From NCBI GenBank assembly GCA_040285825.1, contig JAUPSS010000007.1, positions 334,501 to 398,500 on the forward strand: DNA of 64,000 bases, given 5' to 3'. Below, one piece after another: positions 1,760-45,250 of the stretch; within the stretch, counting starts at the first letter, position 1, and the number at the start of each line of letters is the position of its first letter. The DNA is from Eukaryota sp. TZLM1-RC (taxonomy: Eukaryota; Protista; Metamonada: BaSk clade). The notes under the pieces were generated by a model. It was given only the letters and a program-made list of their open reading frames with translations, was not told the origin of the DNA and did no database searches. Both the position numbers and the translations under genes were made by a program.

Positions 1760-3830
1760 CATATTTTACTTTCTGTCACGGCGTCCAAATTGCACTGTGT
1801 CTTTGCCAAAACGATGCCATTGGCTGATAGTGACTCTTATACTGATTGGAATGCCCAAGCAAAGATTCTACCCGTCAGATCAAGCTCATCCCCTTCACTT
1901 CTCCACTCCCCTTACCCTTCATGCTATGCTCGAAATTCTTCTCGAAAAAAAATTGGAATTTTTTAAAAATGATTTTTTGCCTTTGTGTGATGTCCCTGAT
2001 GTTACGCCTGAAAAAGTACAAAAAAGAAGACATACTTGATCCAAATGTGGCAAGGTTGGTCATAACATTAGAAAATGTCCTGATATTATTACCGAAAAAA
2101 TGATACTGAAAACAAATATTTCTATCGCTAATAGTTTGCAAACGCCAGCCGCACTGAATATTCTTCCTGTTCCCAATGTTTCCGCTGATGATATTAATTG
2201 TCATTTAAATATTGATCAAACTCATTTGCCAAAAACTGTTGCTCCTGATCCTACGGATAATGTCTTGAAACATAATTGTTTTTTTTGCAAAAAGTTCCTC
2301 TCTAATTCTTCCAATGGTCGCCCTCTCTTGTGTTGTTTTGACTGTCAAACAAGTGGTTCTCATCGTGCACTTGTTGAAATTCCTGTAGAGGTGAGTCCTG
2401 TCAGTTCTGTTCCTATGTCAATGGAAATGCGTTCTTTTTCTTCCGGATGGAAATCAAACAAATGGAACATAACAAGATCTTGGAAATTCTTTGCCAAAAA
2501 GAATAAAAAATCAATTAATTGCAAACCAAAAAAATAAAGCCAGTTCATCGTTTCAAGCAAGAAAATTGTTCTTGAGAGGTAGATATGAAAGCGGTTTAAA
2601 CCATATTTTTTCAGGTAAGTTGGCTGATAACAATCATGAAACTGTTGAAAAACTGAAAGCGCTTCATTCAACGGAAAATTTTTGCTTAATTAAGCCGCCA
2701 ATTTGTAAATATTGGCTCGAAAATCCTTTTCAGGCTCATGAAGTATTCATTGATGTTGCCAAATTGCCAAAAAGAAAAGCTGCTGGTCCATCAGGCTTTT
2801 CTTTTGATTTGTTAAAAACTGCTTATAAAAATACTCCAGAAATTTCTGAGGATCTTGCCATATATTTTCAAAATTTAATGTGTTTGAATTATGTTCCTCC
2901 ACCTGAATTGACTGCTGCCCGGTTAGTTGCTTTGATGAAACTAGGAAAAAGTAACAAATCCGATGGAGTTAGACCAATTGCTATTGGAGAGTCTTTAACC
3001 AGTTTGCTGTCCTCTCTTATTTTCAATAGAATTTCTACTAAGGCAAGGGACTATTTGAAACCTTCTTAATTTGGTATTAGAACTATCGAAGGTGCATCTG
3101 TTGCCTCAATGACTTCAAATATTTTTTTCTATAGTAAGCAACATCAATATATTTTCAATTTGGACTTTAAAAAAGCCTTCAATTCAGTAAAGCGTAATTG
3201 CATTTACGATGTCTTTTTTCAAGAATTCCCAGAACTTTCAGCTTATTTTTACTTAATTTATGAAAAAAATTCGGACCTAATCTTTGACACCTTTACCCTT
3301 GTTCTTCTGGTGTCAAACAAGGTGATCCTCTTGGTTCATTGCTTTTTTGTTTGGCTATTCATAATACTATTGAAATGACCCAGAAAGAATTCCCTGAGTT
3401 ACGTATTGTTGCACATTTGGATAAATTTCTATTATTGGTTCTTATGACAGCCATTGTAGGGTTTCTGAAGACATTGCTGCGAACTACAAAGACATTGGAT
3501 TAGTCTTGAATCCCGACAACGTCTTCTGATTGGAAGAACAAAACAATCTTTATTGATTGATGATGTTCAAATTCCTTTCATTAATTATGAACAACAAGCG
3601 TTCAAGTTTCTTGGATATTGGTTAGGTAATTTGGATGAAGTTTTTTCCCAGTTGAAGAATTTATTTGAGAAATTTGACAAGGATGTTAGTTTTATTGCTG
3701 CATTTGATATTGAAAAACACATCAAATCTTTTATTTTAAAAATTTGTTATTCTGGAAAATTCACTCATTTTTTGAGATCAACTCCTTCTTCTGTGTCTCC
3801 TGATTTTTGTTAATTTTTCAGCAAGATATA
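1760..3830 (+). mobile_element. Decayed CRE-clade non-LTR retrotransposon (Cys-rich N-terminus + RT)
   Basis: KAAGPSG, RPIAIGE, DFKKAFNSV and GVKQGDPLG across frameshifted ORFs 2100-3813. Confidence 0.9.
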
Positions 3831-4275: not shown

Positions 4276-5250
4276 TCACCAGGGCAATAGTGAAATCCAT
4301 GTTCGGCTTGACATGGAGTTTACTGATTGTTCTTTAACACTTCTTGTCTTCCTTTTCTTCTTCTTTTCGGGAGTTTCTTCTTTCGGAAGAGATCTGGAGA
4401 GGTAATTAGCCCAATGGTTACAGGGTCCGTCTACATGGACGCAGTCAAAAGAGAAAGATTGCAAAACTGGGATCCAACGTAGCACCACATGGTTGGATTC
4501 TGGGCACGAGAGCAGGTAGGACAGGTTCTTATGATCACAGAACAATGTAAGGTGCTTAATTTGCAGGAATGATGATAAGTTCGGTTGTTTCAAGGTCATA
4601 ACGATTGCAAATAATTTCTTTTGCATGGTAGAACGACGTTGCTGAGCAGGGGTCAGTATTCTGGAATAGAATGATATACGGGCTACATGACATTTGGATA
4701 CGCAGGTTCCTGGTTCAGAGGGAAACAATTCTTTCCAAATATTACCGGCTATGCCTTTCTCAGAGGCATCGGTGAACACTAGTATAATTGAGTTGGCATC
4801 AGGGAGTTCTAGAGGAGTACGGAGTACTTTCGACTATCGTCTTCATTATATTTTGAAAGCTTCTTCTCTGCGTGTCATTCAGAGCAATTCTCTTGGGGTT
4901 ACGTTTCATTAACTCAGTTAAAAGTCCAAGTTCGACACTAACAGAGGGAAGCTAATCTCGGATAAAATTAATAGTTCCTATGAAGGACGGACTTTAGGGA
5001 CAGTAAATGGAATTGGAATCTTCCTGATGGTTTTAATTGGGACGGACAGATTCGACGGGTACCTTTCTCAAAGACGGTACCTAATACGCAGACAAGGAAT
5101 TCTTTGGTTTAAAAAGCACATTTGTAACCAATTCTTACCCTGTATTCACGGGCTCTTGCGAATATATAATCGATTCTTCTCAAAAAAAAACTTCTTTCTT
5201 AACGGCAGATACAATTATGTCATCTAAATAAATAAAAACACTTTCGCAGT
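4276..5250 (-). mobile_element. Ty3/gypsy RT-RNase H fragment
   Basis: VFIYLDDIIV at ~5210-5240; RNase H motifs FTDAS, ISFYSR, LFCDHKNL. Confidence 0.9.
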
Positions 5251-10949: not shown

Positions 10950-11487
10950 AAACACAACAATCTAAATCAAAAACTAAGAACAGTTATTTAATTAAAACTT
11001 ACATGTTTTGTGATCAACATCGGATCAACACAGCAAATAATGGTAATACATTGAAAAAAGAAACCAAGAACCCAATCCTGGTCAATGATGTTCCTCCCAA
11101 AGTCCATTCCATTCATCTTTCTGGTGTTACTTTACGCTTTGAGTCACATGACGTTGTTACTTCAATTCAAAATATTGTATCTTGGTGGCAACAACATTTG
11201 CAATGAATTTTGGATCAAAATGGTTCAAAAAGACTTAAGAACATTTACAGCAAGAGTGGCGTGGCGTGACGTGGTAAAAAAGTGAAAACAACCTGGCTTA
11301 ATTGGTTGGTAATGTTTTCTACAGTAGGACGTAGGCGGTAGATTGTGGAACACCAAGGTGTCAGTCATTCACGAGACGTTGATCACAGAACATGTAAGTT
11401 TTGAGGAGCGCAAACTTTCGTGAGGAGGAAGCTAGAAATGTTTGTTTCCCCATTCCCTGAATTAGATGATGAGTCATGATGACGTGG
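10950..11487 (+). mobile_element. Unclassified repeat family A, internally shortened copy
   Basis: Homologous to 45637-47173 and 57254-58714; 28-bp inverted repeats at 10994-11021 and 11375-11402. Confidence 0.85.
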
Positions 11488-29313: not shown

Positions 29314-31871
29314 TAGACTTGGCAAAGTGGAATCCATTCCATTTTCATTTCCACATTCTCATAAATTGATTCCAAAACGGCCTATTTACGTTTATTCAGA
29401 TCCAGAGTGAAGTTTACCATTACTGACCTTGACAGTGTTGTAGTAATTGGTCGAAGTGGTTTGTTATTTATGAATTCGTAGAAATATTTCTTATGTAGGC
29501 ATTATTTATTGAATTTGCACACTTGATTAAATTAACTCATAACCAATGGGACGACTATCATTGAACCAAGATTTCCTCTACAAAATCTTGATCTGCTTGC
29601 TGTCTAGCTAAAGCTTCTCTTATTCGATTGAAAAACCGAGGTAATTTATTGATAATCCGAGAACGCCATAAAAAAATATCAAATCTTTTCCTTGTTTTTT
29701 CTTGCACCATTTTTTGGAAGTCATTCAAAAAAGTTTCTGCTTCATCTGATAATCTTCCATTTATCGAAAATGGGAAAGCAAAAAAAACCAGCTGTGTATT
29801 TCCATCGGCATTAGCCTCTTCAATATCGTTATCATATTTTTTATGTTTCTCTTTTGCTTTAAGATCAAGAGCAGTCACAGGATTAAGTTTTCTTCTGTGA
29901 ACCAAAGTATCATTTGCAACATTACATGAGACAAAGTCAACAATAGCTTCAGAATTATCAATCCAATCACAGTATACATCACCCCTATCATCAGAACCAA
30001 AATTATTCAGAGAAAGTGTTTCCTTCAGCAGGGGTTCTTTGATACACGATATCCTTGAAGTTTATGCCATATTGAAAACAGTGTCTCTAACAGCATCATG
30101 TAATGAAGAACGATAAGTTATCAATTTAGAGCAATTCAGAGCATGGCGCAAAGTGAGTTGAGGTGAATTCGAACAAATACACTTTTCTTTTGATGATAAT
30201 TGATTAATGGGAATATTCAAATATAATCTCATTTTTGTTACAAATGCTTCATTAGTGACACACAATCCAAATCTTTGTGGTACAATGGTTACAAAAAATG
30301 AAGAATCTGACGACTTGTTTTCACAAACACCCTTTTCCAATAACAATGAGTGAAGATCTTGATTTAAAACAACCGAGCTGCATATATTATTATAAAGATC
30401 TTTTTCATACATTCCTGCCAATCGTTTCTGTAATGTTCGAACAGTGTACTTCAAATTTAAAGCATTTTTTCTGGAATATTGCCATTGAATGATTGGGGAA
30501 AACATTGACCCCATTTTTCTACATCAATTTTTGAAATTTCTTCATTTAATGCAAAAACAGTGGAACTTTGCGTTGTCATAAATAAATCTTCCCAATCTGG
30601 AAATCTTTCGGAAACCTCAAAGATTTCATTTCTGCATCCACCAACAAAAGCACACGAGGTAAGAATAGAAGCCTTCGGCCACCCTAAACCGCCATAATGT
30701 GGACTAAGGTAAGCATGGTGTGGACTTTGGAACAATTTACATTCCATTAATTGTGACAGAACTTTTGCACGTAATTCATTAAACTTCTGAGCCAAAGGCC
30801 TAGTGACAACAGGATTTGTAGATCGAAATATATGATTGAAATTGGAACTAAAACACAGTCTTATAATGGTAAATTTGATGTGTTTTTGTATATCTAAATT
30901 CATCATTCGGTCAATTTTGTCGGAAATCGAGTTCAACTTTTCAAACAATTTTTTGGTAATTTCATCATTATTTCCTAAAAACGAACCCAAATGACGAATA
31001 GCATCAGGTGAATATAATTTGGCTTGAATTTCATTACCATCAACTATTGTGGAAACTGGAGAATTCGATAACAAAACACATTTAAGTAAATTAAGTCGGA
31101 GACCAATTTTGGTAAATAATTCTTTAAAACTTACGGTTGCTTGTTTTACAATATTTAAATCACCAATAAGCACAACATCATCCATATATGCAATCATTTT
31201 TAGCGAAGGAAACATCTCTTGAATTTGCAATAAAATGGGATGAATGGCCAAACAAAACAAAAGAGGTCCTAACAGATCTCCTTGCTTTACACCACTTGAT
31301 GAACTCAAAATGCAATTACCAAATTGTAAATTAGAATATGTGCTATATGTAGGTGTATACAATTCATTTTACTGACAATTAATTATAAAAAAACTAATTC
31401 GACTACCTATTTTTTACTTCAGTGTTTCAAGTATTTGAATTTGATCGTTCTTTAAGCATACCTTCAACTCAGATAAGTTTTTTAATAAAAGTGATGACAT
31501 TATGGCACGTTTGGATGTTTGAATGGAGCCAGCGACTGAAAAGAAGGATTCACAAGGAACAGTTGATGCTGGGCCTGTCAAGTTCATCAGCATGCACTAA
31601 TCAATCAACATGCCCATTTCCAAACAGGGGATGTTTTTTTTCTTTGGCTAAGTTAGTGTTGCCGTAGACGTTTGCAGGTATTTTTCATCATCTGATACAT
31701 CAGCAGTAACGTAAATAGATCCGTTATCAGTCATTTATGCAGGTTGAGTTACAATTGAGTATGGATAATATGTTTCCATTTCCATTTCCATTTTTCGAAA
31801 AAAAATTTCGTCCATTTCCATAAGAATTGGAAATGGAAAATGTTAAAATTCATTCCACATTGCCAACTCTA
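29314..31871 (-). mobile_element. Internally deleted hAT-like element interrupted by a CRE insertion
   Basis: TIRs TAGACTTGGCAAAGTGGAAT and TAGAGTTGGCAATGTGGAAT (reverse complement); TTTCCA subterminal repeats; BED remnant KTSPVWKW..CSL near 31600; no clean TSD. Confidence 0.7.
29503..31345 (-). mobile_element. 5'-truncated CRE-clade non-LTR element
   Basis: GVKQGDLLGPLLF, YMDD, CICS..HALNC, RGDVY; 3' end CAATAAATAA; flanked by TATGTAGG(CAT/TGT); close copy at 43388-44620. Confidence 0.93.
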
Positions 31872-33558
31872 AGTTTGACTATGTCAAGATCTGTCTAGTA
31901 GAATATGTCCGAAAATACCGAACTTCGTTTGATGATTATATTTTATTCCAATAACGACAGCGTCATAAAAATCAGCAAACACACTAATGCAAACAAAATT
32001 GCAATTTATTGCAATTAATTGCTATAACTTAATCAACAATTGATTTTCTCCATGTCCTGGATGTGTATATATAAGGCAATAACATGGTGATTTGGGGAAA
32101 CTAATTGATAAAAGAAAATGCTTTTGTCTTTAAACAACTGCAGGCTTATAGCCAATAAAATTAGTTATTCATAGTTGTTTTTAAAATTATATTTGTTTAT
32201 TAGAACACTTATGAATTAACATATAAATAATCCATTTTTCTGAAAACAAAAACACTAGATGCAACTCTCTTATAGTGAGATGCTAGAGAGCGCAAAGCAT
32301 CAGAAACCATCTTCAACATACCCTACAACAAAAGATGCCGCCTTCAAGCTTCCCAAGTTTGTTACTTTCCCTACTGTTGTTTTAGTCCAACACAAACCCT
32401 GTATGATTATAGGCGAATCCACTATTCGATTCCATGATACCTTCACTGAACGACACTACTACGTTTACTCGTTTACGAAATAGGGAAGAAGCAGAGTGTC
32501 TGTATGTAGTGACTAAAACAAACTCAACAAAGTATTCAAACACACAGGTCTTGGAACAAGGCCCATTTCGATTATTGTTAACTAGCTTATTCTACATTAT
32601 TAAAAAAGAGTCATAATACATCAATTGTCGATCTAAAAGTGTAAAATCAGTGTTTGTGTGAATCCCAATCAGCGCAGAGATAATAGTAGACAACAAAAAA
32701 CATTAGTATTTAGTTATTAGTAGGTTGTATGTTTCTAGTTTTTATAGTTAATTACTTTGAAGTTAATTAATTTTGGAGAAGGGAAGAAATAGTGCTTGTA
32801 CCTTTAGACTTAAGTAAAATAAGGGTAAAATCAATTTACTTAACTTCAGACTTTTCCCTATTCCAATTCTCCAACTGAAGTCTACAAATACCTATATTGA
32901 ACAATTAAACTGGTGATGTTGAAGGTCATTCTTTATTTCAGTTATCTTGATGCAGGGCTATTGGGTCATTGATATACTATTTTTGGAACTAAATAATGAA
33001 TTGCAATAATAATTTAATTTTAAATTGCAAACATTGTCTTTTGGTAAACGTATCATGGATAGCGAAAAGTCAGAAAGTAGAGAAGCAGTAAAGGCAAAGT
33101 ATTGGAATAGGAACAAGATGGCTTGTTTGAATATGTTAAATGTATTTGATCACTGGTTATCCGGTGAAGAAGGTAGGCCTGTTTATCTTAGAACTTAGTT
33201 TATTTTTACTGACTAGTAAAATTTAGTCATAGTTGGCATGTGTCATGTTCAATCGAGATGACTTCGGTTTGGGTGGAAATAATAACATTTGCAAACATTC
33301 AAAAAATCAATTAATGAGTTGTTTCTTTCAACCTGTTAATGAATTAATATAGAAGAACGGTTACAATTATTGAATCAACTAATCATCAATGTTTTCAGTA
33401 TAAGAAACTGGTTTGATATTCAATTATGGAAAATCTAATGTAACAAGTATTTCAATAGAGAAATCATAACTATGATGTATTGTTCAAGTTATACTAACCA
33501 AGATACGACTACGTGTCAAATTAAGAATTACTGAACAAAATAAAAATGAATAAAAATA

Positions 33559-35180
33559 CTACAAATCTGTCGCAAGCAAGTCAATCATAGGCTTAGAATC
33601 AGAGCCATTAAAAGATACAACATGTGGTAGCAAGGTAGCTTTTGTTGCTGATCCTTTAACTCTCACACAACTTACTAAATCCCGCAACACTTCCTTAGCT
33701 TCTTTCAGACGTTGTTGAACTAACAATACTCGAAAGTAAACCATTCTGGTATAATAATACGAATTTGTGGCAAAAAGAGCACAATCAACACCAGCATCAA
33801 CCCGCCGAGAGATCAACTCCTCAATAGACTGTTGCGCCTCAGTAAAGTTCAATGCACACCCTTTTTGCATTGCATCTAGAGCATAAGCCATCAACAATGG
33901 AAAAAACCCAACTTGCAGAATACAAGGTAATTCTCTCATTTTACTAACCAATTCAGAGTAGTAACAGTCATTTATAATATTACGTCTGGTACTACGGCGA
34001 TGTGTCACATAGTTTTCTGATTCAATCTCAGCTAGCCCAGGAGTCTGTCTAGTGAGATGACAACGCTCACATTGACATGGAACTTCCGAGGAATGAGTGA
34101 GACGTTTAGAATAAGGCATGGTGTCTTCCTGATCATATGAAAAACACAATTCTTCACCCTTTTTAACTTCCCGGGTAGTAGCCATAACAATGTAGTCACC
34201 GACGAACATTTGGTGACAATTAAACCTACAAGAATGGTTGAACAGAGACATTTTCATCCACAATCCAATTATATTAGCCACTGAAGGATCAAGTGGATCT
34301 TTTCTAAAGGTTAAATTACTTCCGATTCTATCTTGTACCGTCTTGCGGTTGATTTCCTTCCCATCTGCCCCAGTGAGGTTGAAAAACTCTTGACGTTTTG
34401 GGTTTCCTTCCCTGAGTATAAACTGAGTTTATCAAAAACCAGTTGATGACAAGCAGAATCTTCAGTTGAGATTGACTTGGGGGGTTTGTCAAAACAAAAA
34501 GCTTGCTCAAAGAGAACAACAGAATACCTTGGTATGTCCTGTGAAGCTCTTAGTCCGCGACCTTTATTGCTGGTTTGAAAAACTTCAACATTAGGCCAAT
34601 ACAGATTTGGATGGTAATGCTTTAACCGTCCATTATTGGAGTTTGCTTCTTCATACATCATCTCCCAATCAAAAATTCCCTGGATTTTTTCAAATTCTGA
34701 TTTTTAATCAAATACAATAACTCGATCTCTGTGGTGAGCGACAAGTACAAGAGGGTCGTGGTTTGCCTTATTCGATGTATCTGGTTTGATCACTTCGGGT
34801 TCTATTACAGCAATGTAGTCACCAATGGATAATCTACAGGAAGGGCTCCACAAATAAATTGTTGCACCATTACTGTCCTTGATGATTGTACCTGAAACAA
34901 GGGAACTAGTCTGGGGTGGTGCTAATACTGAAGCATACAGAACATGATTGTGATGAGAGCAGTTCAATTTTTTGACACATTGACGAAGAGAAACGGGCAA
35001 CAGTGAGGTAAAGCTCGACATGGGATCGTATTGACGAAAAATGGAGGTGCAGAAAGTTGTTGGACCACATGTATAGTGGATAGCCACATGTTGTGTCTAG
35101 AAGATATAGACAGATGGGGAGTCCAATCCAAATGCATTTACCAAACCTACATGAAAAATCCATTCTTCATAACAAATCCA
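33559..35180 (-). pseudogene. SET-domain (SMYD/TPR-SET-like) methyltransferase pseudogene, 5' end cut by the Fanzor element
   Basis: KGRGLRASQDI, FNHSC..NC, GEELCFSY, CQCERC; in-frame TAA at 34704, TAG near 35098, frameshift near 34390. Confidence 0.85.
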
Positions 35181-35182
35181 GA

Positions 35183-37040
35183 CACTGTTGAGCTGCCACA
35201 TCGTTTAAGATGGACTGATATCTTCTCCTACAGAGATCTTCTTGACTACTCCCTTTTTAGTTCCTCCCTGTCTTCTTTTAGCACCCGATGAGGATGTGTT
35301 TGTTTCAGGAACTTGCGATGGACAGTTTCTTCTGTTGTGGCCTTCTCCGCGAAATATACCAAATCGTTTCGGTTTTTTGTCCTTCTCAGCAGTCTTCTTT
35401 TTCTGATCTCTCTGTGAAGTAGATGATCCATTTTCGAAATCTTTTGTTTGAGTTTTTGGTCTCTCGAAAATGGATGGTCTACCTTCACCGTTGATTGCAG
35501 ATGTGATAATGGAATATATATTTATGGCAGAGTTGAAGTCTCCATTCCAATACGTGCTGCACGTCTTCATTAAACCCCACGGTGTTGATTTTGCCTTTTC
35601 TTCTAGTAAATCCTTTTGTTCATCGCATTCTTGTTGAAAATCTCTTTTTCTAGTAGGATTGTTTTGATTAAATAGTTCAATTTCTTGTTTTAACTTTTTT
35701 GCTTTTCTTTTGAGTTGTCGTTTGCCCTTAGGACCTAACACTTTAATACTAGAATCGTTGACACATTCTTCAAAATTTCCCTTGGCTGCACAACTGGAAC
35801 AAGATTTACTCGTTCTATATTCATCAACTAGGAAAATTCGATAACCAAATCTTCTTAATAGTTTCCGAATTTCGGTTCCTCTTATGGCTGTCCTTTTCCC
35901 TTCCTTGTATTTCCTTTCGAGCTCCAGTCAACATAACCAATAACTACATGTTCAGTGGAGCAAAAGTCAATTTGAATCTTTCCAACATGTTTTGTTTTTT
36001 CACTTCTTTGATTATTCGAATACGATTGAAATTTTCTTCTTCTGAACCTTTCGTCTTGGGAAAAATATTCATATTAACATTGTACCACTCAAAGTCTTTG
36101 ATGTAATGACCAAAATGTTGACTACAACAAGATTTTTGTCTGTTTGATACAGATAAAGAAAATTGATTTAAATTATCCTAACCTGAGTAATCACCTTCAG
36201 GTAATTGTACCTTCCAAGTTAGGAGTTTTCTTTTTTCCGTTGAACGATATTTGGTACTTTTTCTGTCAAATTGGCGCTCACCAGCAGTATACTTGAACGT
36301 GTGTCACCAGCTTTTGCGTTTCAGCCGTGCATTATGAGAGTCAGAGTTGGAATAGATTGATAGATTTTGTAGTTTTGAAGTTTTTTCTTTTTTTATACCA
36401 TTGCGTTTTTTGCTTCGGATTTCTGGAAGTTGTCTTTTTTATAAAACACATTTTGTGAAATTTGTTTCATGGTAATAGATACAGTAGGATTTGGAGAAAC
36501 ACAGTGTATTAAAATCGTACTCGTTAGGGTCAATAGCAACTATTCTTTTATCTTTTACTTCATTTTTCCGACATTTTCAGCAGAGAAGGAATGTATGTAT
36601 CGCTCTGGGTATTCCAACGTCCTGGAAGTAAAATTCTTATAAGAATTTCCATTTTCATCAACCAGGTCTTTAAGGATTAAGACCACTGAACAACCAATCT
36701 TGTCTGTTACAATTGAGGAAAATTTCAATTGAAAGCAACCTTTAGTCTCACAGTTGTAAGATTCTAATACCTTATCAGTTAGTACTTCGGTAAAAACTGA
36801 TGATCTTATGTCATTTGCTCTCCCTTTGAACTTGCTAAATTTTTCATTGAGCCAAGGAGTATCGAGTCTTATATGCTGTGGAATCAATGTAGTTGTCAAT
36901 GGAAAAGGATTACTGACTGGCGACGGTTTGCCATCCTGGGAACAAAATGATTGAATGCTTCTGTCAACTCCTATAGCATGAGAGAGAAATTTCAAAGGTT
37001 TGGCTGATCGAGTATTATAAATTTTTTTACCCTAAATAGA
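35183..37040 (-). mobile_element. Decayed Fanzor1 (eukaryotic TnpB-family RNA-guided nuclease) element, 5'-truncated
   Basis: FPLTTTLIPQHIRLDT; TDKIGCSV; RuvC-I IVAIDPN (D 36529-36531); FKYTAGER; VVIGYVDWS; RuvC-II LVDEYRTSKSCSSC (E 35820-35822); RuvC-III WNGDFNSAINI (D 35538-35540); several frameshifts. Confidence 0.9.
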
Positions 37041-37213
37041 AGTTGTAATTAAACAATGTTTCACAAAACAAAAAAAATTCAAAGTGAACTCTTGTTGGGT
37101 TCACTCACAAGAATGAACCAATGATGAACCAAAGTATAAATTTGAATTTTGGATTAAACAATACTCGAAACTGTAGTTTTCAACTCCACAACCACTGTCT
37201 ACAGTTCTCCTTC

Positions 37214-38935
37214 ATGTCATCCCTTTCAGTCTCTGCTTGTCGTGAGATCTCCGCTGCTGAACTCACCATTGATCTGGAACACGGACAAATTGGTCGAGGT
37301 GGTTTTGCTACAGTATTCGCTGCACTATGGTTTTCCAACGATGTTGCTGTCAAACTCATCGCTCTCGTAGACGAAGGTGAGACCAAACTCAAGAAGGAGA
37401 TCGGCCTCCTCTCTCTATTGAACCATCCTGGAATTATCCGTGTCTATGGTGTTACTTATCTCGACAACAAAATGGGAATCGTCATGGACCGGGCATCTTC
37501 CTTCCTTCACACACCTTCTGTGTTGTCCACCACAACCCTATCACATGCAATATCGATAACCTCTGCTCTCCTATTCCTTCACTCCAACAACTTTGTTCAT
37601 AGAGATCTGAAGCCACAGAACATTTTGATGGTTGATGGTCGTCCCAGAATATCTGATTTCGGAACTTCCAAGATTGTTGCAGAAACGGCTACTTTGAACA
37701 CCATCAATGTCATGACGCCTAAATACGCTGCATTGGAAGCCTTTGATAATAATTCATGCCAGGAAAGCGATGTCTATTCCCTAGGGGTAATTTTATATGA
37801 ATTACTTACTAATAAAGTGGCTTTTGAGGGAATTAATTCTCAGATAGCTTTGTTTGGTGTCAAATGCAGAGGTACTCAGTTACCATTTGATGATACAACT
37901 CCTCTTTCATTACAAAATATTATTAATAAATGCTTGGATAATGATCCATCCAAAAGGCCTTGCATTTGTCAAATTTTGGACGTGTTAAATCAATTGACAG
38001 CCGAAGTTGGCATTGATGAGAGTTTTGCAATTGAAATTAATAATAATGATGAATTCATTCAACAATTACGTCGAAACGATCTCAAATTAAGGTCAGAAAT
38101 AAATCAATTAAATGAATCAAATCATAAAAAAGATGAATTAATAGCAGGTCATGATCAAAGAATTCAAAAACTAAATGATGCTGTTGATACCAAAGATAGC
38201 CAACTAGAACAATTGTCTGTTGAAATACTGCAATTGAGGGCCCAAAATGCCAAATTGAAACACCAAATCGAAGAATTAGAAAGGCAAAACGAGCTAAATA
38301 CCAAATTAATTCACTCCAACTCATCTTTCATTAGGATTTGTGTGTGGGCTTGGTCACAGATTCAGAACAATATTTTCGAAACTATTGAACAAGGATTTAG
38401 TCAAAATTGGCCCAATATTGATCTACAAATTGCTGCAACTAATGAACTTCATTTGAACAACATTGATAATTTTGATGTTTTTGTATATAATAGTCTGGGA
38501 CTAGAAGTTGAAGCCGCACTGCTTGAGCAAATAGTGGCAGCCGGCAAAGGTCTGGTTTTGTTCAGTTGTGAGGGATACAACATCAAGGGTGATTTTAAAT
38601 ATGGGGCTTTTAAGGGTTTGACTGGTAGTAAATACCTTGGCTCTTTCATGGAAATATCTCATTCTGACCAAAAGGTTCTTATTATGAAATCAGTAAACTC
38701 ATTTTCTTGTGATCGAGGTGCAAAGTACACTTCCATCAACCCTGACTTTCAAGCTGTTGCTTGTTTGGAAAATGGAGAGCCTTTGTTGTTGAAGAGTGAT
38801 TACTACAAAGGTAGGGTGGTGGATTTTGCTTCAGATGGTTTCAGTTGTGTCAGTGTCTGTGGATGGAAAAGCTCCACAGATGGTCACCTTTTGCTAGCAA
38901 ATTCAATAGTTTGGGTTTATGGAAGAGATTATTAA
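37214..38935 (+). CDS. TKL-like protein kinase + coiled coil + C-terminal alpha/beta domain
   Basis: GRGGFA, VAVK, HRDLKPQN, DFG, ALE, SDVYSLG; intact ORF (upstream in-frame ATG at 37121 also possible). Confidence 0.92.
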   Translation: MSSLSVSACREISAAELTIDLEHGQIGRGGFATVFAALWFSNDVAVKLIALVDEGETKLKKEIGLLSLLNHPGIIRVYGVTYLDNKMGIVMDRASSFLHTPSVLSTTTLSHAISITSALLFLHSNNFVHRDLKPQNILMVDGRPRISDFGTSKIVAETATLNTINVMTPKYAALEAFDNNSCQESDVYSLGVILYELLTNKVAFEGINSQIALFGVKCRGTQLPFDDTTPLSLQNIINKCLDNDPSKRPCICQILDVLNQLTAEVGIDESFAIEINNNDEFIQQLRRNDLKLRSEINQLNESNHKKDELIAGHDQRIQKLNDAVDTKDSQLEQLSVEILQLRAQNAKLKHQIEELERQNELNTKLIHSNSSFIRICVWAWSQIQNNIFETIEQGFSQNWPNIDLQIAATNELHLNNIDNFDVFVYNSLGLEVEAALLEQIVAAGKGLVLFSCEGYNIKGDFKYGAFKGLTGSKYLGSFMEISHSDQKVLIMKSVNSFSCDRGAKYTSINPDFQAVACLENGEPLLLKSDYYKGRVVDFASDGFSCVSVCGWKSSTDGHLLLANSIVWVYGRDY

Positions 38936-40759
38936 TAATCTTGGCCATTCTTTACTTGATAAGAAATTAGCTCCTGATTCAGCGGTTTTTAATAAAACTC
39001 AGCTGAAATAGCAACATCATTGACGACATTGCCTGAAGATACAACACTGGACAGGGCATACAATCGAAGTTTCTCACATTATTTCAAGTTAAAACAAAAT
39101 TTACTACATATAATTCCAATCAAGAGCTCCAACAGGTATCTGTTCAAAACCGAATGGACTCTAATAGACTATAATCGAAACCTCCATATATCATCACTCT
39201 GTGACCACGGAATGTTAGTCCAGGTCGCCAGTTTGTAAGAGAAAAGCGAAAAGTCCGTAACTTGTTGGTAACTTGTTGCATTTTAATCATATTGATGGAG
39301 AACGTTGTTTTTTGTATGAAAAGGCAACAACAGAGAAAAATGACACTGCAATAGAAAATTCTTCTATTTCCCAGTGTTTGGACAAAGTTCTCCCAAAGAC
39401 AATTTTTTTGTCATTATCCATGGAATTTAATGATAGTTGAACTTACGCTTTAACTGATATGCCGATTGAAGCAATGTCGTAGAGACAAGGAAAAGACACT
39501 GTACGGAGAATTATATGGTAATAAAAGCCAAATGTACACGTAGTATTTTAACTAAACTGGTATTGACCCTATTTCCATAATTGAACCACCCACATTCAAT
39601 ATCAATATAATCAGCCTATACAATTTAATTATTGTGATTTTTTTATTATATAATAGTTTTTAATATTGAAATTTTGTTACAATATAAGCATGAAAACATG
39701 GATAAGGAAGAATTTTATACAACAGCTGGAATTACTACTCAGATGCTGAAAAGATAAAAATCTTAACCCTTGTTGAAAGTGTGGTGTAGAACGCCATATC
39801 CATAAAGATGTACAGCCTAGCGCCGGATCTCTTAAATTTATCATACAACGTTCTTTTTTTGCAACATTTGGGGGTACACCATAGCCTTTTTTAATACATT
39901 CTCTTGATCTACCAGGAACCTTGGAGTTGGACATGTGAAAATCAGCACCAGTCGAAGCGTTAGTTACTAAATATGAATAAAATTAAGAATAGATTACATT
40001 ATTGACTAAATAAAACAATACAAGAAATAATCAATGAGCTCAAAAGAGAAAAAATTTATTTGCCATTCCTTCCAAAAACCCAAAATATTGAATTTGCTAG
40101 CAAACCAGAGACCTTACCAACCATCAAGAATCTGCTTGTTGCTCTTCTATCAAGCAAGAAATAGAGGCAAAACAGAAAGAAAATGGTTCGAAAAAAATGG
40201 TTTGTTGAGTTAATGTCGGAACCTATCTTTATTAAGAGTTTTTGATCTTCATTAGCATCAGCATTGACCACAGCGGGAAAGAGCCATAGAGGGGATTGGA
40301 ACAACCTGATCACAACCCTCAGTGAGTGAATCTTTCTCGAAAAAAGAAGGTAAATTAAAATTTTGAAAATTAGGTACCAACAATAATAGAACGTTTCAGG
40401 AGTGAATTCGATACTTCCTCCATAAAATCAATGGAGGAAGATCTTGAGTGTGGAAGAAGAGTCTGGTAGATGATCATAGTCACTGAATGCATCATCTACA
40501 CAGCTCACAGTAAAGAGTATGTGGAAGTACTTTGAGTAGAGTACCAAAAGAGCACGATGAATAAGAAACTCTTCGCCATTGAATCAACAAAAATCAACAA
40601 TGTAAAGGATTTTTGCCGATTTTTATAGTTGGCTATTCTGAATAAGAGTTCATTATTGAGAGTCCAAGTGAAGGTCTCAATGAATTCGAGCTCAAGATAT
40701 TATTGAAATTTGGATTGATCTAAATTTTGGTGGGAAATTTTGGCTCCAAGCTTAATTTT

Positions 40760-41890
40760 ATTCATTTAATAAGAAATATGACAACATACAATACACAATT
40801 AAAATTCTGCATCCTCAAAACCTGCATCCCCCACTTCAAAACAATTAATTGCCAAAGATTCGGAAAATTAGCAGCCTTTCCTGAAGATTCAAGCAAAGAA
40901 AAAACAAAGGGACACAAAATATATTGGGCATAAGAATTTTCGTTATTCGAGGATATGGGTTTCGCATATTTAGCGTTTTTATATTTTTCGCCTGCAAGAA
41001 GAGGACTATTTATATTTGAGTTAATGAAATGTTCGTTAGAGGAATTACAAGGGTCAGTAGACATGGCGTCTAAAATAGTCAAACTACCATTTAAACCGGT
41101 AGCAACTAGATCACCTCTTGTCAGACCCATAGAAGCTCTGTTGTAACACGTACTATCAATATTGGGGTCATCAAGAATTAATTTTGATAACAAAGGCTCT
41201 AAAAAGGAATCTACTCGATATGATTTGCACATAACATAACTTTGGTTCCTGGCGTTAATATGCACTTTGCTTTTAAATGTATTGAAATGTTTACAGTTCA
41301 AAAGATAAGTAAACAAAAAAGGTTTACCACATTTACATGTGAAATGATTGGGCAAATAGTTTGGCCACAGAAAACAACGAAAAACCATGTTCAAAAGCCA
41401 TTCATTGTTTCTTAGCAAAAGTCTATAAACGGTGGGAATTTGAGTTACTGAAGCAGCAGCAGAACTATCACGAATATCCTTCAAAATATTGCCGAAAGCG
41501 GGATTGTTGGTTTTGGCCAAGCCAAGTCTTTTTTCATAATCCAAGCCTTCATATAATTTAACCTGATGGTGCTGAAGTTGTTTTCAAGCAAAAACGTAAA
41601 TTTGGAAGTGATCGTGTGATGAAGAAGATGAGTAAACACAAGAGGTTTACCACATTTACATGTTAAATAATTAAGGCAAATTGTTTGGTCATAGAAAACA
41701 ACGAGAACGCACGTTTAAAAGCCATTCATTATTTTTTCAACATAACTCCATAAACAGAGGGAATTGGAGTTACTAAAGCAGCAGCAGAACTATTACGAAT
41801 GCCTTTTAAAAAATTACCGAAAGCGGGTTTTTCAGTTTTGGTCAAGCCAAATCTTACTTCATAATCCACGCTTTCATATAGTTTAACCAG
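40760..41890 (-). mobile_element. CRE-clade 3' fragments (segment present twice, diverged)
   Basis: CKCG..LLNC, RGDLV, ILDAM, CPFVFS; 41640-41890 resembles 41320-41560. Confidence 0.85.
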
Positions 41891-42399
41891 GAGGTTACAG
41901 TCAAAGAATCTGGATCACTCTTTGATTGATTTTGCTCTTTGATTCTACAAATTGGAAGTCAATTTCCATGAAGTGATGAACTGAAGGTATTCAAAAGAAA
42001 TACTGATGAACAGGAAATGGCAATTGCATCCAATATTGTTTTTGAAAATGTCAATAATAAATTGACTTATTACTTAGATGCAAAGCATTTGTCTTTTGCA
42101 AATGTGGTCTTGGCTTTTTGCAATCTTACCTTGTTGAACAAGGAACGTCAAATTGAAAAGTAAATTCTTCTAATCGATCCTGACCCAGTAAATGTTATTC
42201 AAGAAGTGAAACAACGAAGATTCATTTGAAAACCGAACTTGAATACAATTGACAATTTGGAACAATCTGCTTTAATGGTGAAGAAAGAAACAGTTTGACA
42301 ATTGGCTCTAAATTCGGAAACAGGGTATATCAAAACTGAATCATATGAAGTTTATAAATCACCATAACAAATGCATATTTATTTATCAAATACACAAGT

Positions 42400-42965
42400 A
42401 AAACGCCACATCCTCAAAACTTGCATCTCCTACATTGAAACAGTTCATTACTGTAAATTTGGCATATTTTTCAAAGGAAGAAAGTGAATCAGAAATTAAT
42501 TTTACCATTTCCTTGTGAATGGAAATTACATCCAATTCTGCCAGTATCCACTATTGAAAATTCTTTCAGTCCTCTCTGTTAAAACTAAATCGAAATTTTC
42601 AAAGAAAGCCAAAGCAGTCGTAGCTAGAGAACCGAGCAGGGAAAAAACAAACGGACATAAATTAAATTGGACAGGAGAATTTTCATTGACAAGCGAATTA
42701 GGTTTCGTGCATTTAGTAATTTTTGTGTAATTCTCCAGCAAGAAGAGGTTTATTGATATTTGAATTTATGAAATGTTACTTTGAAGAATTATAAGAGTCA
42801 ATGAACATGGGTCCAAAATTGCGAAGCTCCCATTGAAGCCGGAAAAACCAAATCACCTCCTGTCAGACCCATTGAAGCTCTTTTGTAACGGGTACTATCA
42901 ATATTAGGATCATCAAGAATTAATTTTGATAACAGTAGTTCTAAAAAGGAATCTACTCGATATGA
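42400..42965 (-). mobile_element. CRE-clade 3' fragment
   Basis: Homologous to 40800-41230; LCPFVFSLLGS, YWQN. Confidence 0.8.
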
Positions 42966-45250
42966 TTGGGTGGTGGCAAAAATTTTATTTATGAGTTATT
43001 TGTATGAGTTATCTTGTGAACTTGAAAAATTGCCGCCACAAATTTGCACCAAATGTTTTCCTCAATCGATTCAAGAAATTCCAAACCGATCTCTTTTTAA
43101 TTTACAGTTTTGCTGTAAAAAGCTTCAACAAAAATTGTCAAAGATTTTTGAAAACTTGGATTTTGATGTTAGACCAGGCTTGGCCAAGAAAAAGAATCCC
43201 GCCTTTGCAAATCTTTTACAAGATATGTGTGACAGTACTTCTTCTGCCTTAGTAACAACAATTCCTCAAGTTTATGGTACTCTCTTAACTGATTCTGCTT
43301 GGACTCTAAATATGAGATTTCGTTCCTTTATCTGTCCTGATAATTTACCTCATAATTTAATTTGTAAATGTTCTCGAGAAATTACAAATACCTTAGTCCA
43401 CATTATGGTGGTTTAGGGTGGACGAAGGCTTCTATTCTTACCTCGTGTGCTTTTGTTGGTGGATGCAGAAATGCAATCTTTGAGTTTTCCGAAAGATTTG
43501 CAGATTGGGAAGATTTATTGATGACAACGCAAAGTTCCACTGTTTTTGCATTAAATGAAGAAATTTCAAGAATTGATGTAGAAAAATGGGGTCGATGTTT
43601 TCCCCAATCATTCAATGGCAATATTCCAGAAAATAATGTTTCAAATTTGAAGTACACTCTTCGAACATTACAGAAAAGATAAACTGGAATGTATGAAAAA
43701 GATCTTTATAATAATATTTGCAGCTCAGCTGTTTTAAATCAAGATCTTCACTCATTGTTATTGGAGAAGGGTGTTTGTGAAAACAAGGCGTCAGATTCTT
43801 CACTTTTTGTAACCATTGTACCACGAAGATTTGGATTGTGTGCCACTAATGAAGCATTTGTAACAAAAATGAGATTATATTTGAACATCCCCATTAACCA
43901 ATTATTGTCAAAAGAAAAATGTATTTGTTCGAATTCACCTCAACTCACTTTGCGCCATGCTCTAAATTGCTCTAAATTGATAACTTAACGTTCTTCATTA
44001 CATGATGCTGTTAGAGACACTGTTTTCAATATGGCACAAACTGCAAGGATATCGTGTATCAAAGAGCCCCTGCTGAAGGAAACACTTTCTCTGAATAATT
44101 TTGGTTCTGATGATAGAGGTGATGTATACTGTGATTGGATTGATAATTCTGAAGCTATTGTTGACTTTGTCTCATGTAATGTTGCAAACGATACTTTGGT
44201 TCACAGAAGAAAACTTAATCCTGTGGCTGCTCTGCATTTAAAGCAAAAGAAAAACATAGAAAATATGATAAAGAAATTGAAGATGCAAATGTCGATAGAA
44301 ATACACAGCTGGTTTTTATTGCTTTCCAGTTTTCGATAAATGGAAGATTATCAGTTGAAGCAGAAACTTCTTTGGATGACTTCCAAAAAATGGTGAAAGA
44401 AAAAACAATGAAAAGATTCGATATTTTTTTATGGCGTTCGCGGATTCAATTTGCCATTATTAATAGATTACCGCGGTTTTTCAATCGAATTAGAGAAGCT
44501 TTAGCTAGACAGCAAGCAAATCAAGATTTTGTAGAGGAAATCTTGGTTTAATGATAGTCGTCCCATTAGTTATGATTTAATTTAATCAAGTGTGCAAATT
44601 CAATAAATACGAAAATTTTTAGAAATTACAACCACTCATTTGTTAAATTGTAAACATTTTATTACTTTTAGAAGCAAGGTTCATGATGCTGTAAGAGACT
44701 AGTTATATTGTATGTGTGAATCTCATAGAATTGAATCCCTCTTGGAACCTCTGTTGTCAAATCTGTTTGATGCTGAAGATGATTTTCATAAGAATAATAG
44801 AGGTGATGTTATATTACCTGGACTCGATGGAAGTTTCATTTTATTGGATGTAATGTCTGTTGATCCTTGTAATGCCTCAAATGAAAGGCTAGTTAATTCT
44901 GAAATTCATAATCCCCTTTCAAATGCTGAAAATTTCAGATTCAAAAAATACAATGAACCTTTGTCCAAATTGGCCAGTCTACAGCATGCAAAATACAATT
45001 TGTATCCATTTGTATTTTCCCTTTTTGGTTCACTTGCACCAACTGCTTTACGTTTTTTGGATGATTTTGAAATGATTGTAAAGAGAAGAACTGGCAGAAA
45101 TTTCAACAGATTGTTTTGGCAAAATAGAATTGTGTTTTCCATTTTTAAGGGGATGTTGAAGATGGTTTCTGATGCTTTGCTTTCTCTTGGATCTCACTAT
45201 GAGAGAGTTGCATCTAGTGTTTTTGTTTTGGGAGAGATGGATTTTTAGAT
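42966..45250 (+). mobile_element. CRE-clade 3' portion split by a second CRE insertion
   Basis: ICKCSREIT|THLLNCKH is restored on removing 43388-44631; RGDVIL..LDV..YPFVFS..FWQNRIV. Confidence 0.9.
43388..44620 (+). mobile_element. 5'-truncated CRE-clade insertion with 11-bp TSD
   Basis: TSD AGAAATTACAA at 43377-43387 and 44621-44631; near-identical to 29503-30710. Confidence 0.93.

Follow-up and report, generated by a model that had tools for sequence, protein, structure and literature searches.

Fanzors, the RNA-guided nucleases of eukaryotes and relatives of TnpB and Cas12, are under development as compact genome editors. Motifs of such a nuclease had been noticed, scattered over several reading frames, in strain TZLM1-RC (GCA_040285825.1), which we take to be Skoliomonas litria, and they raise the question of what kind of gene they come from, whether anything could still be encoded there and how the copy relates to others in the genus. 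The locus lies within a 64,000-nt stretch of DNA, hereafter the window, of which positions 32214-43935 are identical to JAUPSS010000007.1:366714-378435 (GCA_040285825.1). It is very probably a dead, 5′-truncated copy of a single-gene mobile element of S. litria, in which Fanzor1 stands behind a 2A peptide and a PolB-type 3′-5′ exonuclease, and of which the last ~2.0 kb were kept. The identity of the copy, its limits, its lesions and its membership of the family can be read directly from the sequence.

The locus and its motifs

The host of the relic is the free-living protist S. litria (TZLM1-RC), and its neighbours, on a 3.2-Mb contig, are a SET-domain gene and a eukaryotic protein kinase. The relic is unannotated in GCA_040285825.1, falling in a gap with no annotated gene that extends from a 116-aa gene ending at 34661 to the kinase, annotated from 37214. 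It is slightly longer than the span originally given, 35183-37040, as homology to sibling copies runs from ~37099 to ~35115; from ~37100 upward the flank is unrelated sequence, and the kinase gene is located there. The kinase ORF (37121-38935) is open from 37121 (604 aa), and the public annotation starts it at 37214 (573 aa); no significant Pfam match was obtained for its C-terminal ~300 residues. The surroundings of the locus contain several unrelated repeat families. An ORF fragment of a reverse transcriptase (PF00078) is found 4 kb away, at 30460-31362 on the minus strand, and another repeat, at 41162-41613, shares 88% identity with positions 9541-9992 of L001, one of the sibling loci described below.

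The minus strand between 35100 and 37150 was translated in three frames. All the motifs quoted in the initial annotation are present on that strand in the order stated, spread over the three frames. The features listed here were placed with the help of SpuFz1, the Fanzor1 of Spizellomyces punctatus (PDB 8GKH; Saito et al. 2023, PMC10432273), of P0153, an annotated 644-aa relative from Skoliomonas sp. GEM-RC1 that spans the same region as the window copy, and of profile A3, built from 18 family sequences:

35115-37099, minus strand: whole relic, the 3′-terminal ~2.0 kb of a Skoliomonas exonuclease-Fanzor1 element, comprising a 5′-truncated pseudogene and a 3′ UTR (DNA homology to siblings, junctions read in alignments)
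36558-37031, minus strand: open piece A, 158 aa in frame 2, covering the stretch of Fanzor1 directly before RuvC-I (part of WED/REC), which holds the next two motifs (hhalign to profile A3; aligned to SpuFz1 through P0153)
36858-36905, minus strand: FPL...IPQHIRLDT, frame 2
36684-36707, minus strand: TDKIGCSV, frame 2
36523-36543, minus strand: RuvC-I motif IVAIDPN, frame 1, catalytic Asp codon 36529-36531, aligned with VVVIDPN of SpuFz1 through P0153
36271-36297, minus strand: FKYTAGERQ, frame 1
36020-36049, minus strand: RFRRRKFQSY, frame 0
35921-35947, minus strand: VVIGYVDWS, frame 0, the Glu-less strand that occupies the canonical RuvC-II position, aligned to MGDWSD of SpuFz1 through P0153
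35790-35867, minus strand: RKLLRRFGYRIFLVDEYRTSKSCSSC, frame 2
35790-35834, minus strand: FLVDEYRTSKSCSSC, with the alternative catalytic Glu (codon 35820-35822) and then the first CxxC of the TNB zinc ribbon (PF07282; alignments to SpuFz1 and Parasitella Fz1)
35550-35789, minus strand: lysine/glutamate-rich insertion of ~70-80 aa between the zinc-ribbon halves (copy alignment)
35517-35549, minus strand: RuvC-III motif WNGDFNSAINI, frame 2, Asp codon 35538-35540 (SpuFz1 alignment)
35457-35489, minus strand: GEGRPSIFERP, frame 2
35322-35363, minus strand: degraded CCHC zinc knuckle of the C-terminal tail, FGIF...H....C (CGLC/CGMC...H....C in siblings; copy alignment)
35205-35207, minus strand: family stop codon TAA, shared among copies
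35115-35204, minus strand: 3′ UTR (~90 nt) to the family's common right end, with the palindrome AAATGCATTT (four-copy alignment)
36442-36576, 36307-36438, 36181-36303, 35885-36073 and 35208-35927, minus strand: further stop-free pieces, the last of 240 aa

Read in this order, the relic starts in the middle of the WED/REC region of Fanzor1 and continues into RuvC-I (IVAIDPN); next come a rearranged RuvC-II (GYVDW without Glu, the alternative Glu being that of VDEY) and a zinc ribbon interrupted by the charged insertion, and then RuvC-III (WNGD), a basic tail whose CCHC knuckle is ruined, the stop codon and the ~90-nt 3′ UTR. In the window copy the alternative Glu lies ~40 residues after the Glu-less strand, and the first CxxC of the zinc ribbon (CSSC) is present, with the second pair degraded (CQTC in the majority of copies). 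When the six open pieces were compared with the whole 64,000-nt window by tblastn, no further copy of the family was found in it.

Assignment to Fanzor1

The open pieces were searched separately, and no joined or read-through protein was used as a query. The last piece passes the Pfam cut-off for the Cas12f1-like TNB domain (PF07282; 30.8 bits against a cut-off of 26.3), which places the set of motifs far beyond chance, while the five upstream pieces gave nothing meaningful in Pfam and no piece had an NCBIfam match. In an exhaustive HMMER search, the last piece matched 271 proteins at E<=0.001, many of them 600-750 aa long and matched at the C-terminus. The pieces are colinear with full-length relatives in BLASTP, as on P0029, where piece A covers residues 249-369, piece C 491-540 and piece D 551-662.

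The last piece also matches SpuFz1 directly (E=1.5e-4). P0153 does so at E=1e-13 and also matches the Fanzor1 proteins of Parasitella and Guillardia. Compared with the PDB, profile A3 matched SpuFz1 end to end (E=3e-91), Parasitella Fz1 (4e-89) and Guillardia Fz1 (2e-57), with no TnpB, Cas12, Fanzor2 or other non-Fanzor1 chain at E<=0.01. Piece A aligned with columns 235-375 of the same profile (hhalign probability 98.2%, E=3e-14). P0153 was also modelled with AlphaFold (mean pLDDT 62, with values above 85 in the RuvC core). The best seven Foldseek matches of the model were all Fanzor1 structures, with SpuFz1 as the best match and with SpuFz1, Parasitella Fz1 and Guillardia Fz1 heading the list; Fanzor2 (E=6e-3) and Cas12 ranked far below Fanzor1 (5e-15).

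The family shares with SpuFz1 the WED/REC part, RuvC-I (IDPN), the Glu-less RuvC-II strand, the Glu in (L/V)DEY(K/R)TS followed by CxxC, and RuvC-III WN(R)D. A rearranged RuvC site, in which the canonical Glu is lost and an alternative Glu stands ~40-45 residues downstream, has been described for Fanzors (PMC10530073). The Fanzor1 reading is supported by the SpuFz1 alignments, since they place the Asp, the Glu and the Asp, including this rearranged site. The first reading of the locus as Fanzor1 with its D-E-D triad retained thus holds: P0153 and profile A3 match only Fanzor1 chains in the PDB, the fold ranking agrees, and the three catalytic positions align, through P0153, with those of SpuFz1. 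By its motifs and matches, the locus is a Fanzor1 relic.

Truncation and decay of the window copy

Four siblings of the window copy were found in S. litria, at loci reached through the annotated fragments P0001, P0178, P0179 and P0180, so that the family is a repeated element of a eukaryotic nuclear genome, with at least five copies in S. litria. They are 88-90% identical to the window copy overall, with local DNA homology of 86-93%; L001 shows 88% identity over 1857 aligned bases. The spans homologous to the window copy are:

L001, 4913-6749
L004, 4626-5869
L005, 3995-5692
L006, 3936-5855

At the right end, three siblings stop together with the window copy at ~35115, ~90 nt past the shared TAA. 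On the left, the window copy resembles L001 and L005 from ~37099 onwards, upstream of which L001, L005 and L006 stay mutually similar for 200 nt to >1 kb, and L001 there carries homology to the PolB exonuclease (3462-3743) and a Fanzor N-terminus (4512-4913). Given that sibling homology runs on upstream, with these two parts in L001, the window copy is 5′-truncated. It begins at about column 235 of the Fanzor1 profile, so the first third of the Fanzor part is missing and a complete N-terminal WED/REC part is lacking: the family is a member of Fanzor1, and the copy is a fragment. The 2A peptide and the DEDDy exonuclease are missing as well, as tblastn with P0008 found no match upstream of 37031 in the window. 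Each of the five copies has a 5′ end of its own, and one 3′ end is common to four of them.

Two of the sibling loci contain further Fanzor sequence. L005 (3797-5692 plus flanks) has lost both of its ends, and an 11-nt direct repeat, AATATTCATTT, stands on either side of it. In its 5′ flank, the RuvC-III motif (FWNRETNSALNI) of another Fanzor remnant can be read, so that one Fanzor fragment lies inside or beside another. At L001, several full-length Fanzor1 proteins used as tblastn queries detected a second, divergent remnant, 4 kb away from the first one, at 10961-11432 on the minus strand.

The lesions of the window copy were located as follows:

37032-37034, minus strand: nonsense codon TAG, AAG (Lys) in the four siblings (alignment to siblings)
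36304-36306, minus strand: nonsense codon TGA, TGG (Trp) in the majority of copies (five-copy alignment)
36178-36180, minus strand: nonsense codon TAG, CAG (Gln) in the majority of copies (five-copy alignment)
36436-36557, minus strand: three single-base frameshifts private to the window copy, -1 at ~36557, +1 at ~36512 and -1 at ~36438 (five-copy alignment and pairwise alignment to L001)
35894-36060, minus strand: a further four frameshifts, namely -1 at ~36060, an A-run shift at ~35995, -1 at ~35962 and -1 at ~35894 (copy alignments)

There are thus seven changes of frame, compared with the three noticed in the initial annotation. Between ~36512 and ~36438 the true frame is frame 2 (HCVSPNP...QNVFY). 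A TAA at 36439-36441 was rejected as a lesion and is an artefact, because it belongs to a stretch that lies out of frame between two compensating indels. All seven frameshifts, as read from the assembly, are single-base events (one possibly of two bases), mostly in short homopolymers, and the S. litria assembly is Nanopore-based with Illumina polishing (PMC11316075). In public sequencing reads from two runs we found sibling-like contigs and one 173-nt contig identical to the window copy; a sibling contig from run X1 had the opposite indel state at 36556, 36511 and 36434. The pseudogene call rests only in part on these indels, given that the nonsense substitutions and the truncation are separate from them. 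Conserved residues have changed as well: among the five copies, only this one has WNGD for WNRD (the conserved Arg replaced by Gly), its second zinc-ribbon CxxC is lost, and the C-terminal CCHC knuckle has two Cys-to-Phe changes.

A majority sequence drawn from all five copies has almost no interruption, with open stretches of 385 and 275 codons, which indicates that the copies decayed independently from a coding ancestor; the window copy is the most distant from it (K2P 0.07, the largest among the five). Inactivation combines the loss of the gene front, seven frameshifts, three nonsense codons and the changes in conserved residues. The first description of the copy as dead was therefore correct and understated, as three nonsense codons and the missing gene front come on top of the frameshifts. 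Judged on these lesions, the window copy is dead, and no nuclease can be encoded.

Could the gene nevertheless be intact or nearly so, a working short Fanzor of ~640 aa like P0153, with frame changes that are indel errors of the assembly or small introns? One-nucleotide events in or near homopolymers of a Nanopore-based assembly would fit this, as would P0153, which is an annotated 644-aa ORF of the same span in three GEM-RC1 copies. We consider it very unlikely, given that the three nonsense codons arose by base substitution where siblings have sense codons and that conserved residues of RuvC-III, zinc ribbon and knuckle are altered. The stretches between the frames align to sibling coding sequence and are therefore not introns. 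Moreover, P0153 is itself a split model, with the Fanzor N-terminus in an upstream 277-aa model in another frame, and its span is without the first ~234 columns of the Fanzor1 profile. The chance that the locus is instead a prokaryotic TnpB, as a contaminant or recent transfer, or a Fanzor2/IS607-type element appears negligible. PF07282 is common to TnpB, Cas12f and both Fanzor groups, and the family has the RuvC-plus-zinc-ribbon core, and a weak fold similarity, in common with TnpB of IS200/IS605 (e.g. ISDra2) and with Fanzor2 (mimivirus ApmFz2, PDB 9B0L). However, profile A3 reaches no chain of either group at the threshold given above, the fold comparison separates Fanzor2 from Fanzor1 by many orders of magnitude, no TnpA or serine recombinase is found nearby, and the setting is eukaryotic, as the 3.2-Mb contig has a protein kinase on one side of the locus and a SET-domain gene on the other. 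A truncated, broken Fanzor1 copy remains the reading that we adopt.

The initial annotation had also proposed that this protist lineage hosts a Fanzor family of its own, with intact siblings possibly elsewhere in the genome. The family is borne out by the S. litria siblings and by its relatives in Skoliomonas sp. GEM-RC1 and sp. RCL, of which there are dozens; what had been missed is that the locus is the tail of a longer fusion, as seen from the long ORFs of RCL and the exonuclease remnant of L001. An intact sibling in the same genome was not recovered: all four fetched siblings are broken, intact long ORFs were found only in the sister species RCL, and word-indexed protein searches with the RCL long form matched only RCL proteins. 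The missing intact S. litria copy is weak evidence, since repeats were masked before annotation (PMC11316075); five copies were seen.

The parent element and its 3′ end

In Skoliomonas sp. RCL, the relatives are uninterrupted single ORFs of 1473-1491 aa, several copies of which are 93-94% identical, and they run from a 2A peptide through a PolB-type DEDDy exonuclease to Fanzor1. The 2A motif, DVEANPGP, lies near residue 105. The exonuclease domain (PF03104, E about 1e-13) has its best PDB matches in DNA polymerase delta and carries the motifs ExoI FDVET, ExoII GYNCDKFD and ExoIII YYCVND, and Fanzor1 with the TNB domain makes up the C-terminal ~630 residues. GEM-RC1 shows the same order distributed among three gene models, and the frame changes there at L002 3827-3833. 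The window copy belongs to this fusion element through its DNA homology to L001, which has the exonuclease remnant upstream, and on that homology the window holds only the tail of the exonuclease-Fanzor1 design.

Unlike SpuFz1, the Skoliomonas long form has the N-terminal 2A peptide and exonuclease, and the family has a charged insertion of ~70 aa in the zinc ribbon and a C-terminal CCHC knuckle; the window copy further differs in being truncated and broken, with no omegaRNA or inverted repeats found. Intact relatives would presumably act like SpuFz1, with an omegaRNA from the 3′ end of the element guiding a single RuvC site to cut DNA beside a TAM.

Other domains and genes accompany the family. 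Among the family proteins of S. litria and GEM-RC1, 27 retain the CCHC knuckle (CxxCxxxxHxxxxC) of the C-terminal tail (including P0001, P0153, P0165 and P0178); the RCL long form lacks it, and SpuFz1 does not feature it. A protease domain of the Ulp1 type (PF02902) stands upstream of the PolB-type exonuclease in GEM-RC1 (L002 1217-2923) and in P0188, an 1846-aa RCL protein that has a 2A motif and in whose domain search no Fanzor domain was found. Directly upstream of one RCL exonuclease-Fanzor copy lies a PIF1-family helicase gene (L007 411-2399, minus strand), which may belong to the host or to a Helitron-like element.

The truncation pattern has a precedent in the Fanzor1 families CRe-1, CRe-2 and CRe-3 of Chlamydomonas reinhardtii, whose copies are often 5′-truncated and almost all keep the 3′ end (Bao and Jurka 2013, PMC3627910); the likeness to the S. 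litria copies, with five 5′ ends and one 3′ end shared by four of the five, is one of truncation pattern. The CRe families are tied to Helitrons, often with variable target-site duplications (PMC3627910), whereas no such duplication of >=7 nt was found at the two junctions of the window copy. Around the relic, terminal inverted or direct repeats were limited to short, chance-level matches.

The 3′ UTR is where the end of an omegaRNA would be expected, and it is a candidate only. Rfam gave no match on 34900-37200 at E<=1. The single-sequence fold of the 3′ end is less stable than shuffled sequences (z=+1.99), and RNAalifold on four close copies found no compensated pairs and no covariation. Special conservation of the 3′ UTR was rejected, as it is the least conserved segment (85% mean pairwise identity vs 93% in the adjoining coding part). 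Three siblings have a same-strand host gene whose start lies 62-77 nt past the right end of the element (L001 6749-6826; L004 5870-5935; L006 5867-5944). For the window copy, the corresponding distance to the nearest annotated start on that strand is 454 nt (35115 to 34661), with an unannotated 127-aa ORF (34704-35087) in the gap. The neighbour of the RCL copy L003 is on the opposite strand, so a nearby same-strand host gene is not a rule of the genus.

These observations bear on whether the locus might still be useful although its protein gene is dead, its 3′ end yielding an omegaRNA for an intact Fanzor acting in trans or serving as promoter or 5′ UTR for a downstream host gene. Such ORF-less ghost loci with a conserved omegaRNA are known for Fanzors (PMC10432273), the family 3′ end is kept in four of five copies while 5′ ends vary, and a host gene follows closely on the same strand in three siblings. 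We think this improbable, however, considering the low conservation of the 3′ UTR, which has neither unusual folding stability nor covariation, the lack of an intact family member among the S. litria sequences found, and the 454 nt that separate the window copy from the nearest annotated same-strand start.

A simple pseudogene remains the preferred reading. Skoliomonas elements may spread from their 3′ end, possibly by copying begun at a Fanzor-made break and aided by the fused 3′-5′ exonuclease; we regard this as doubtful. It is suggested by copies that are 3′-anchored and 5′-truncated and by the three siblings whose 3′ end lies 62-77 nt upstream of a same-strand host start codon. Since the RCL element is apparently one ORF with short UTRs and seems to encode no other protein, such copying, if it took place, would replace cut-and-paste by a separate transposase, and the window copy would be an aborted product.

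We found no literature linking Fanzor to Metamonada, Skoliomonas, Trichomonas or Giardia, and no Fanzor paper mentioning an exonuclease or polymerase domain, or a fusion with a polymerase-type exonuclease, in the part of the literature covered. Alone, the window copy is a pseudogene from which no activity is expected. It displays two C-terminal features specific to the family, the zinc-ribbon insertion and the CCHC tail, and it extends a Skoliomonas family, whose intact relatives join a proofreading-type exonuclease to Fanzor1, by a further copy that is mapped, dated and bounded. Its main value is comparative, as it defines the right end of the element, dates the family and documents the pattern of 5′ truncation.
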